DNA of 64,000 bases from Saccostrea cucullata. Taxonomy: Eukaryota. The first letter of the stretch is position 1, and the number at the start of each line of letters is the position of its first letter. The stretch covers positions 682,001 through 746,000 of the forward strand of contig NW_026929981.1 of NCBI RefSeq assembly GCF_032062105.1, given 5' to 3'. Made by a program: the position numbers and the translations under genes. This document shows, piece by piece, positions 22,801 through 27,659 of the stretch. The notes beneath the pieces are model-generated. The model was not told where the DNA came from, made no database searches, and was given only the letters and a program-made list of their open reading frames with translations.

Positions 22801-24175
22801 CTGTTGAAAAATATTGATTTTGTTGAAATTAAAATGAGAGAGAGATAGAGAAACAGTATGTGTGTGTTTACAAAATGTCCTCCCTAATTTTAATTGGTTT
22901 AGAATTTTGCCCCCCCCCCTCCAAAAAAAAAAGGGACAGGGAAATATTTATTTCTATTTGAAAAATAAACCATTTGGCTATTTATCTTAAACAATTTAAT
23001 CAATAGCTATCTAGATGTAAATATATCTATAAAATACTAGTATGTGGATTGTATGCAGTAGAACCCGTAATAGATATTGATACTACTTGCAATTTTATTT
23101 GCCGGATAGGCCTAAATTCACGGTCAGAATAAGGCATTTTTGTTGTGTATTTTTAAGTAATTTTTACAGTCCTAAAATACACCTCTTATTCAAAATATAT
23201 TTTTACCTAAGAATTAGAATCTTTCCATGATTTACTTTCCACTTTCGTAGGTCAAATAAATTGACTTATAGGTTTTGAGATAAATTGATTTATAGGTTTT
23301 GAGATTTAGAAATTGCTTCGCGAATTTATTATGTCACAGCTAGGGGGGATCCAGGAATTTATTCAGCTAGTAATTAAATATTTTCAGCAAAATATCTTTC
23401 TGTAATTAAATTATAAGCATAGTTTCTTTTTCTAATTATTTATATTACCTCTAAAAAGTCCATGACTGTGGCATTCGCATTTTCTTTCTTTTTCTTTTTT
23501 CTTATTTCTGCTGACGTCAAATTAATCTTTGCAAACTATGACATTAATTTTTGGCGACGTTTTTTCTCAATTATGACGTAATACCAATAAGGGCCCTTTT
23601 CGCATGGGATGGCTCATATATTATAACATTTCAATGATTTTAGAGTCAGGTCATCCTAGTTAAGGTGAAGGTTGCGATTTCATCCTGGAAGGTAAGAACA
23701 AAATGATTAAGAGCTTCCACCTGGTGCACCTAAAGAAAAGCATTGGAAACAAACGTGCTGCAATTTAGATAAATTAGAGATGGTAATGAAATAAAAATAA
23801 TTTTTTTTTCTTCATTTATTGTGTTTAGGACACAGAAAAGCCACTTGTTTTAACATCTTCTTTGTTTTGAATGCAAATCCTGTACAGAGGTCATGTACCC
23901 AATAATAACATTTTTTCCCTCTATGGGAACACCCCACCCACTGTCCTCTTTCTTCAGTTCCCAAACAAATGTTACACTGCTGTGATGCATTAGCGTCAAA
24001 CGCCGCTGTTTGTGTTAATCTGGTTTTCAAACTTCCAGCAGTCGTACTGCCTCCAAGTCTTTTTCGATTAGGGGAAGACCATGTTGAATAACAGGAAGTT
24101 AATGGTAGAGGGGAGGGATAACTGTACATAGAAGAGGAAGTACATGGCCGTGAGGGAGAGGAGTGAGAATATAAA

Positions 24176-24385
24176 GAGCGAGAGGAAGATTGCCTTGAGG
24201 GAGAAGAGCGTGGTGGCGAGGATCGTGAGGTTGGTTGTCTTAAGGAGGGCGAAATTGTGAAGAGGTTGAAGAGCGTGAGGCAGATTGCCGTGAGGGAGAA
24301 GAGGTTGAAGAGCGTGAGGCAGATTGCCGTGAGGGAGAAGAGATCAAAGAGCGTGAGGCAGATTGCCGTGAGGGAGAAGAGGGTG
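24176..24385. repeat. 39-bp coding minisatellite (SSPSRQSASRSST on minus strand)
   Basis: GAGCGTGAGGCAGATTGCCGTGAGGGAGAAGAG unit occurs 3 times, plus degenerate copies. Confidence 0.85.
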
Positions 24386-24686
24386 TTGGAAGAGCGTTAG
24401 GGATATTTTCACGTGACCCTCTGTGGTGCAAATCATGAAACATCTTAAAAAATAAATCATACATACGTATATTCATATGCCAGTAAAATATAATTTTCGA
24501 TAAAATTGCGTTTAATTACTCACCAGTTTTTTAATGAAATTTAAGTTTAAGACGTGTCACCTGATCAAAATCCGCTGTATGAAAGTGATATTGAATACCC
24601 GACTTAGTTTTCACCAGCAGTAATATCTCACATCCTGTAGTTACATTAAGTTCCTTTGCCTATTAAAAATATTTGACATTCTTATA

Positions 24687-25709
24687 TTTTTAGCTCTACT
24701 GGTCTGAGACCAGAAGAGCTTATGCGATAGTAATGCGTCCGGCGTCCGTCCGTCTGTCTGTCCGTCTGTCTGTAAACAATTTTTCAAAACGCTACTCCTC
24801 CTACAATTTTAGTCTGATTTCAATATTACTTGGCACACAAGTAGACTACACTAAGATACATGGAATAGTGCATCAGTTTCTGATTTCAATGAACGGTGTT
24901 GCCATGGTTACTAAAAATAGAATTTTCTGTGAAATTCCTTTAAAACGCTACTCCTTCTACAGTTTGGTCTGATTTCAATATAACTTGGCACACAAGTAGA
25001 CTACACTAAGATACATAGAATAGTGCATCGGTTTTTAATTTCGATGAACGGTGTTGCCATGGTTACTAAAAATAGAATTCTCTGTGAAATTCCTTTAAAA
25101 CACTAATTCTTCTACAGTTTTGGTCTGATTTCAATATAACTTGGCACACAAGTAGACTACACTAAGATACATGAAATAGTATATCAGTTTTTAATTTCAA
25201 TGAACAGTGTTGCCATGGTTACTAAAAATAGAATTTTCTGTGAAATTCCTTTAAAACGCTACTCTTTCTACAATTTTGGTCTGATTTCAATATAACTTGG
25301 CACACAAGTAGACTGCACTAAGATACATAGAATAGTGCATCGGTTTTTGATTTCAATGAATGGTGTTGCCATGGTTACTAAAGATAGAATTTTCTGTGAA
25401 ATTCCTTTAAAACGCTACTACTTCTACAGTTTTGGTCTGATTTCAATATAACTTGGCACACAAGTAGACTACACTAAGATACATAGAATAGTGCATCGGT
25501 TTTTGATTTCGATGAACGGTGTTACCATGGTTACTGAAAATAGAATTTTCTGTGAAATTCCTTTAAAACGCTACTCCTTCTACAGTTTTAGTTTGATTTC
25601 AAAATAAGCTGGCACACAAGTAGACTACACAAAGATACATAAAATAGTGCAATGGTTTTTGATAAGTACAAACCAGTAGAGCTACAGTCTCGACAGAGAC
25701 TTCTGGTTT
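24687..25709 (+). mobile_element. Helentron-type element with 156-bp satellite array (about 5.5 units), copy A
   Basis: subTIRs AGCTCTACTGG/CCAGTAGAGCT, 5' and 3' hairpins, (GTCC/GTCT)n tract, unit period 156 (24786 to 24942). Confidence 0.9.
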
Positions 25710-26289
25710 CATATTATATATCAAATTTTAAATTTATTAGATAAGGGAAAATATGTGCCAATGCTTCAATCTGACATCTGAGGAAATAAAGAAAGTATAT
25801 ACCATACTATTTTGATGAAAGAAATAGAGCACTGGAGAGTTGAACTTAATTATAAGGACACCGAGTATTTAAGTTCACCCATGACTAAAACAACACCACA
25901 TAGCATTTTGAATAAAGATTCAGACCATGAACTTGTAAATTTCTCTGCATTTTGTAAAAACAATCTTAATATGTTCCTTGAAGAAAGTTCAAAAACAAAT
26001 TCAATTAAGGTTATTAAATTAGACCCAGTTTTCATTAATTATCCCAGACGACAGAAAAAATTTCAATGCAATTGAAAAAAAATCAAAATCGGAAATCCTC
26101 AACATCATTGAAGATGAATTGCAGAGATTACAGAAAATGGATTATGATCTTGGTAAATACGTTTGGATTTTACAAAATGAAATGAAAAGGGGAAGGATTT
26201 GTTTAAATAGGTTTATAAATTTATTTCTTCATAAACAAATTTCCATGTATTCTTATAGGATTAGAATAACGGCAGCTGTTCAGAAATAT

Positions 26290-26820
26290 AAATCAAAGTA
26301 CTCAGAAGTACAGAAAAGCTATTTTAGAATGGATTTCTTACATGAATCACGTTTATATTCTGATGAAAAAATTATTTTAAAACTATCAATATAAATGATA
26401 AGACGCTGACAGTGAGTTTTTCAATCCTAATACCACGGTCCGATTTTGTCAGTCAGAATTAATCTGGTACCGCAGCTGAATGTAAACAAACAGGCCAGTC
26501 TGGTTCCCTCTCCTGTTTTACCTCGTATGTGTAGAGAACTACGGTAACACTGATTATCAAAAATCCTTACGGTAATGAACTATGTTCTTCGACTTATGAA
26601 GTTTACAAGTCATTACTTCAAATGCTTATTTTATATAGATAAAACTTCGTTTTATTTTTGTTGCTTTATTTAGCGTTTGTATTATCTCAAAAGTGGTTGA
26701 GAGTAAGAACTATATTTTTGCACGTAACTTTAAAATGGCGACTATTGGGTTAACATCCTGCCTTGAACAGGATCACATAAGCCGGCAATTGCTCTTTGAG
26801 CAATAAGCCCGGCTAAAAAT
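26290..26820 (-). mobile_element. Helentron-type element inserted in a transposase exon
   Basis: Reverse complement of 48838-49387; removing it restores QLFRNI-KNEKKAILIKFY. Confidence 0.75.
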
Positions 26821-27659
26821 GAGAAAAAAGCTATTTTGATAAAGTTTTACAAAGATGTAAGGCAAATGATAGATCACATTAAGAGTAGGAATGCTGAGGA
26901 CAATGATGAGGAAGGTGCGTATTTTTTAATGTTCGTATATATATTTCAACATATTTTTTTTATATTCATATTTTTATTACCTTATTAAAAAGAGTTTTTT
27001 ACGTTGGTACAGAGTCCTCAACAAACTGTGTACCAGCCCCCACTCCACTTCTTGGTTTCTCTCTCCTTGGTTGACTTTTAATGTTTCTTCCTTTGTTTAC
27101 CCTATCTTTCTCAAATTTATACTGTTTGCTTTCCTATAAAGTAAAAGAAGTTTAGATATATGAAAAAAAGCCCAACACGCTCACTAATGAATAATTAGGC
27201 TCTATATGGCTCTCCGTAGATATCTGCCTGAATGATGATATTTGCTCCTCATCCGTATCCGGCACTTAGATTTAAAACACCATTTCCTGTTTTCAAGGCT
27301 ATCGAGTCATGTCGGAGGAGGTAGTACAGGTATGTCATTTATGTTTCGGTTATTATTCGAGTTTTTCGTCAGTAATGGCGAACTTTATGCATTTTATACA
27401 GTACCCCTTGAGTATTAAGCTCGTAGTTATGTTAAAATGCATCCATATTTTGGGGATGTGAAAGTTTTTACATACAAATTAAACATTACGTTAACAGTTT
27501 ATGTACTCAGCATAATGCGACTTTTCCTCGTGCTGCCCAACATCCCGAAAAACCGGTATCGATAACTGATAGGTAAATAAAGCTATTTTCGGTAGGTTTA
27601 AATATCCATGTCTGTATTTTAGCTATGTAGCTAAATCTAGTGATTGTACTGGACCTGGA

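Follow-up and report, generated by a model that had tools for sequence, protein, structure and literature searches.

The locus and its transposon

The window analysed here was a stretch of 64,000 nucleotides of the oyster Saccostrea cucullata (NCBI RefSeq assembly GCF_032062105.1, contig NW_026929981.1, positions 682,001 to 746,000 of the forward strand). At 23616-27657 it holds the right half of a DNA transposon, as delimited by homology to other copies recovered by DNA search of the 1.17-Gb genome. Transposase exons lie on the plus strand, and those of an antisense partner gene, with a predicted MADS box and PHD finger, on the minus strand. A preliminary description of the window had reported that the exons alternate by strand, and this order was borne out. 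The features of this copy, with boundaries corrected against other copies, were as follows (TIR, terminal inverted repeat).

23644..23782, plus strand: transposase exon with the region of the third catalytic residue (DFILE..N); stop at 23661-23663, frameshift near 23714
23812..24443, minus strand: last exon of the antisense gene, a Ser/Pro/Arg-rich repeat linker followed by the PHD finger (23815-23982, C4HC2H); one linker frameshift
24561..24659, minus strand: second half of the MADS box (helix end, two strands); both ends phase 0
24692..25710 (approximate boundaries), unstranded: later insertion of a 156-bp tandem-repeat element, missing in copies C19527 and C20993
25741..26152, plus strand: exon for the transposase C-terminal domain, within the MADS intron; frameshifted
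26259..26914, plus strand: transposase exon interrupted by an insertion; coding parts 26259-26292 and 26813-26914
26293..26812, unstranded: unrelated high-copy repeat of about 520 bp, foreign to the transposase, with a TAAA target duplication
26981..27133, minus strand: first half of the MADS box (basic arm, helix start), inside the last transposase intron; frameshifted, with 21 nt fewer than its counterpart in C17397
27220..27269, plus strand: last coding transposase exon, with a phase-1 acceptor and a stop at 27267-27269; acceptor and stop kept in three copies
27564..27657, minus strand: right TIR of about 94 bp with the end ...GGACCTG, the only TIR left in this copy

GT/AG sites were present, as first described, at 23782, 25741, 26152, 26259 and 26914 on the plus strand and at 27133, 26981 and 24659 on the minus strand. 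Several of the original exon limits required correction. The first transposase exon had been started at 23641, three nucleotides early. The MADS exon had been drawn as 24524-24659, which contains a stop codon; the donor kept in six oyster copies follows 24561. For the PHD exon, comparison with other copies places the acceptor at 24443 and not at 24418. Donor 24561 and acceptor 24443 are both phase 0, so the MADS box and PHD finger join in frame. The transposase exon proposed at 26259-26914 has the expected splice sites, but 26293-26812 within it is a separate repeat, absent from copies C19527, C20993 and C17397 and with 1760 candidate copies genome-wide; the true exon is therefore 26259-26292 plus 26813-26914. 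This repeat showed no obvious TIRs. Its insertion target is TAAA/TTTA, and each of the two sites inspected carried a 4-bp duplication. Two further candidate exons were not supported: the one ending at 27185 on the minus strand was not conserved as coding in other copies, and 27298-27329 on the plus strand, with its donor at 27329, lies past the transposase stop. The window copy is dead, having lost its left half (homology to other copies ends at 23616), received two later insertions and accumulated stops and frameshifts; its pseudogene status had been recognised from the start.

Other copies gave the complete structure. Copy C17397 is nearly intact at 6,839 bp, with TIRs of about 93 bp opening CAGGTCCAG and ATTAC flanking both sides. 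A second oyster copy, C7311 (7,793 bp), has the target site duplication (TSD) TTAAA, and complete elements were found in an abalone (7,662 bp, ATAAA), the ark clam Tegillarca (6,631 bp, TTGAA) and the annelid Owenia (about 9.5 kb, ACGGA). All five have CAG...CTG ends, reading CAGGTC or CAGTC, 5-bp TSDs and TIRs of about 40-260 bp. A Mercenaria copy had TIRs and no clean target duplication. The element is a multi-copy, two-gene, cut-and-paste TIR transposon.

The transposase and its antisense partner

Domain and profile searches of the spliced genes were run exon by exon and not on joined models. Transposase relatives were present in oysters, clams, abalone, amphioxus and an annelid, with 590 cluster representatives at E below 1e-30. 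A structure model of an intronless relative (predicted local distance difference test score, pLDDT, 83) aligned best in fold with the P element (Z 12.8), Hermes (9.8), integrases, ISCth4 (8.2) and RAG (6.4 over 338 residues). This model predicts a transposase core of the RNase H DDE type that contains a large helical insertion. Among 83 long relatives, conservation of D238, D414 and E627 was 99-100%. A Foldseek search gave nothing below E 0.5, and a sequence search of the PDB with the transposase profile gave no match at E 10, hence none to RAG1 or Transib. The Pfam domain of the RAG1 N terminus, PF12560, opens two transposases of the family (P0052 and P0173).

The partner gene was identified by two domains. 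In the window the second-half MADS exon, read from 24659, matched SRF-TF positions 23-48 (E 0.035), and the PHD finger at 23815-23982 matched its Pfam profile at E 7e-5 and 23.2 bits (cut-off 24). The two MADS exons of C17397 matched SRF-TF positions 2-24 and 20-48; Pfam scores of single exons were under the cut-off. Element-adjacent copies with the MADS box in one frame exceeded it, at 33.7, 33.0 and 27.7 bits. Such boxes were located at C13325:8343-8450, C15692:38445-38561 and C1240:7369-7470, in open frames of 525, 254 and 126 amino acids, with no PHD match near them. Against the PDB, the top matches of the separate MADS exon profiles were MCM1 12-46 and 49-78 and SRF 6-40 and 42-72; MEF2 was not among the matches. 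The SRF-type signature ELSTLTG is present in the MADS box of two relatives. By these sequence matches the MADS box is classed as SRF/MCM1 type rather than MEF2 type. Its likeness to SRF and yeast MCM1 is one of sequence type; here the box is diverged, predicted to be fused to a PHD finger, and split by an element-specific phase-0 intron, the codon position of which is shared by oysters, abalone, ark clam and amphioxus. A MADS exon searched against the atlas returned nothing usable. Twelve Pfam SRF-TF matches were found in the genome, two of them strong and probably host genes, and four antisense beside transposase matches.

The PHD finger is a C4HC2H variant with eight zinc ligands, of which the last is His. 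Its best PDB matches were BPTF, TAF3 and ING4 (E 0.007-0.02), and two invariant Trp align with positions of BPTF and TAF3 that we take to be methyl-lysine cage residues. In L043, a low-coverage assembly, the second half of the MADS box and the PHD finger lie within one exon, one frame slip apart, and thereby support the fusion independently of splice prediction. For the MADS stretch of L043, a structure modelled from the single sequence reached pLDDT 58 and was not informative. Between related families, the ratio of nonsynonymous to synonymous change (pN/pS) was 0.17-0.66 for the antisense exons, similar to the 0.24-0.45 of the transposase exon, with synonymous sites near saturation; the antisense exons thus show purifying selection.

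The two genes are linked well beyond the window. A hand count from coordinates placed a transposase exon of the opposite strand no more than 3 kb from 32 of the genome's 37 matches to the MADS first-exon profile. The full order of catalytic exon, PHD, MADS C-terminal half, transposase C-terminal exon and MADS N-terminal half was found in about 16 oyster copies, and again in two abalone families, in Tegillarca and in two further assemblies. Chance nesting, a possibility raised in the preliminary description, is contradicted by this recurrence, and the proposal of a transposon family with an antisense MADS and PHD accessory gene interleaved with its transposase is supported. Interleaving is a trait of one branch and not of the whole family, since the genes are simply convergent in Mercenaria, in L043 and in several oyster families. 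In one molluscan branch, two convergent genes would have become nested in each other's introns. The transposon architecture is real, old and widespread.

Comparison with known elements

The family had at first been filed as Academ/DUF6589-like, DUF6589 being a marker of Academ-like transposases. DUF6589 scores were 15-37 bits (cut-off 27), with 26.8 and 25.5 in the closest intronless relatives and 37 in two others, so that this likeness is weak and mostly under the cut-off; the MADS-PHD partner is a difference from Academ. XPG nuclease and helicase Pfam domains were absent from nine long transposases and from the C17397 exons. The TSDs of AcademX are 3-4 bp and those of AcademH 9-10 bp (PMC10045372). 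Membership in either was rejected on the 5-bp TSD of the five elements and on the lack of an XPG nuclease or helicase match, and the Academ filing was not supported as it stood. The RepeatMasker class "Academ-2" has been used for bivalve repeats (10.64898/2026.02.10.705023), and the transposase may already be catalogued under that label. In the literature searched (which did not include Repbase Reports and most subscription journals) no MADS-bearing animal transposon was found. The claim that the architecture is undescribed thus apparently stands for the MADS-PHD accessory gene, though possibly not for the transposase.

Two-gene TIR elements in which the second protein binds the element ends include PIF/Harbinger, with its Myb/SANT accessory protein, and CACTA, with TnpA. 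Their layout is like that of the present element; the transposase, ends and TSD differ, and here the MADS box would be coupled to a histone reader. The maize CACTA elements ZEM/TMZ1 carry MADS fragments and are a precedent for a MADS box within a transposon, but the box described here is conserved across phyla as part of an element gene and is no recent capture.

Parallels in design were also seen with RAG. RAGL elements have a 5-bp TSD and a convergent partner bearing a PHD finger (PMC7204232, PMC10629977). The present family shares the 5-bp TSD with RAGL/ProtoRAG and Transib, a second, convergent gene with a PHD finger at its end with RAGL, the RNase H DDE core with an insertion domain (in the model) with RAG, a PHD ending in C-x2-H with vertebrate RAG2, and, in some transposase relatives, the N-terminal PF12560 with RAG1. 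The differences are also clear. Transib and RAGL begin with a CAC heptamer and have G/C-rich TSDs, whereas the ends here are CAG and the TSDs mostly A/T-rich; the RAGL partner contains a kelch propeller, whereas here there is a MADS box and no kelch match. Membership in RAGL or Transib was rejected on the ends, the RAG1-core sequence and the missing kelch.

Proposed role and further copies

The role we favour, and hold to be slightly more likely than not, is that of a transposition cofactor: the MADS-PHD protein would bind the element ends and read methylation of histone H3 lysine 4 (H3K4), much as RAG2 does. A MADS dimer would bind A/T-rich pseudo-palindromes within the TIRs of the element itself, bend them and, like the Harbinger Myb protein, assist in loading the transposase; the PHD finger would bind methylated H3K4 and tie the complex to open chromatin, as does the PHD of RAG2. 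Candidate sites are available in the TIRs. In oyster families, TIR positions 18 and 36 carry MEF2-type 10-mers. Two related oyster copies have them in perfect form (p 0.007 and 0.04 versus shuffles, in a post hoc test), and in the other copies they are mostly one mismatch away. They suggest putative MADS sites, and no more than a lead.

Several results weigh against this role. The TIR motif was found post hoc, is perfect only in the two related copies and at one further TIR site, and is not significant in most TIRs; moreover the motif is MEF2-like and the protein SRF-like. Protein searches with the PHD exon gave five PHD-exon translations and no annotated or full-length MADS-PHD protein. In amphioxus the antisense MADS gene ends in a Gly/Arg-rich tail with no PHD, and there is in addition a HIRAN-like frame; in Owenia the antisense gene is HIRAN-like and a MADS box is at best degenerate. 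Neither domain is therefore proven essential. Expression was examined on C17397 with three poly-A runs of 2026 (about 45% read) and one contig set, all under the same species label; in these samples the exons were almost uncovered and no splice joint was seen. Splicing is thus predicted and not observed, the RNA result being one of near-silence in those samples and not of an absence of splicing.

A less likely role is that the MADS-PHD protein regulates transcription of the element outside the transpososome. It would bind close to the promoters of the element and act either against silencing or by limiting transposase, and overlapping transcription would contribute interference. Transcription factors and chromatin proteins are the usual setting of MADS boxes and PHD fingers, the TIR motifs sit beside both promoters, and interleaving makes the pre-mRNAs overlap. 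Many relatives are, however, not interleaved, so that overlap is dispensable, and the expression data lend such regulation no support. It is unlikely that the protein instead steers insertion, with the MADS box on host CArG/MEF2-like sites and the PHD finger on active promoters: four of the five TSDs are A/T-rich and the MADS signature is of SRF type, but five insertion sites are too small a sample, and a high A/T content is in any case general in mollusc genomes. That the antisense exons are captured host fragments carried as passive cargo, or unrelated genes nested by chance, is very improbable, in spite of the low single-exon Pfam scores and the near-lack of transcripts, since the partner, strand and MADS intron position are the same across bivalves, abalone and amphioxus, the protein is kept where synonymous sites are saturated, and the gene always lies between the TIRs. 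Conservation across transposases of about 30-45% identity largely refutes both readings, and chance nesting was rejected.

Taken with the favoured cofactor role, these comparisons allow a wider proposal, which we offer tentatively. The family may be an unnamed animal lineage of superfamily rank, with CAG ends and a 5-bp TSD, in molluscs, annelids and amphioxus, that uses an SRF-type MADS protein as its end-binding subunit; a reader of H3K4 methylation would have been added in molluscs and some relatives, the RAG1-RAG2 design would have been reached independently, and dozens of MADS-box genes in animal genomes would have this lineage as their hidden origin. Animals are generally credited with SRF and MEF2 as their sole MADS proteins; this mobile family supplies dozens more SRF-like boxes in one oyster genome. 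It would also provide a second, independent case of a transposase with a convergent PHD partner, making the reading of H3K4me3 by RAG2 testable by comparison. From oysters to abalone the two genes have stayed nested in each other, which offers a model for interleaved genes arising from convergent pairs. Near-intact copies exist that are usable for assays.

The HIRAN-like frames were located at L041:16146-16523 (plus strand, Pfam E 0.07) in amphioxus and L042:16763-17038 (minus strand) in Owenia. By sequence likeness they would represent a further accessory module of the family. In the abalone assembly L040, one family member (9484-17145) was inserted in the TIR of another (9374-22006).

The window contains other remnants. 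Immediately to the right of the TIR, 27623-28136 (minus strand) carries broken reverse-transcriptase-like frames, Penelope-like by eye and repeated in the genome. A second, diverged remnant of the family consists of a transposase C-terminal exon at 30853-31229 (plus strand) and a MADS first-half exon at 37281-37349 (minus strand), split by a long terminal repeat element whose TGT...ACA repeats lie at roughly 31787-32157 and 36834-37203. A third and more distant transposase remnant, a broken catalytic region, lies at 44841-45566 (minus strand). At 51907-51995 there is a TIR 76% like that of the element itself, opening to the right. Genome-wide, 973 candidate TIR matches were found, which suggests that many non-autonomous derivatives of the element exist.

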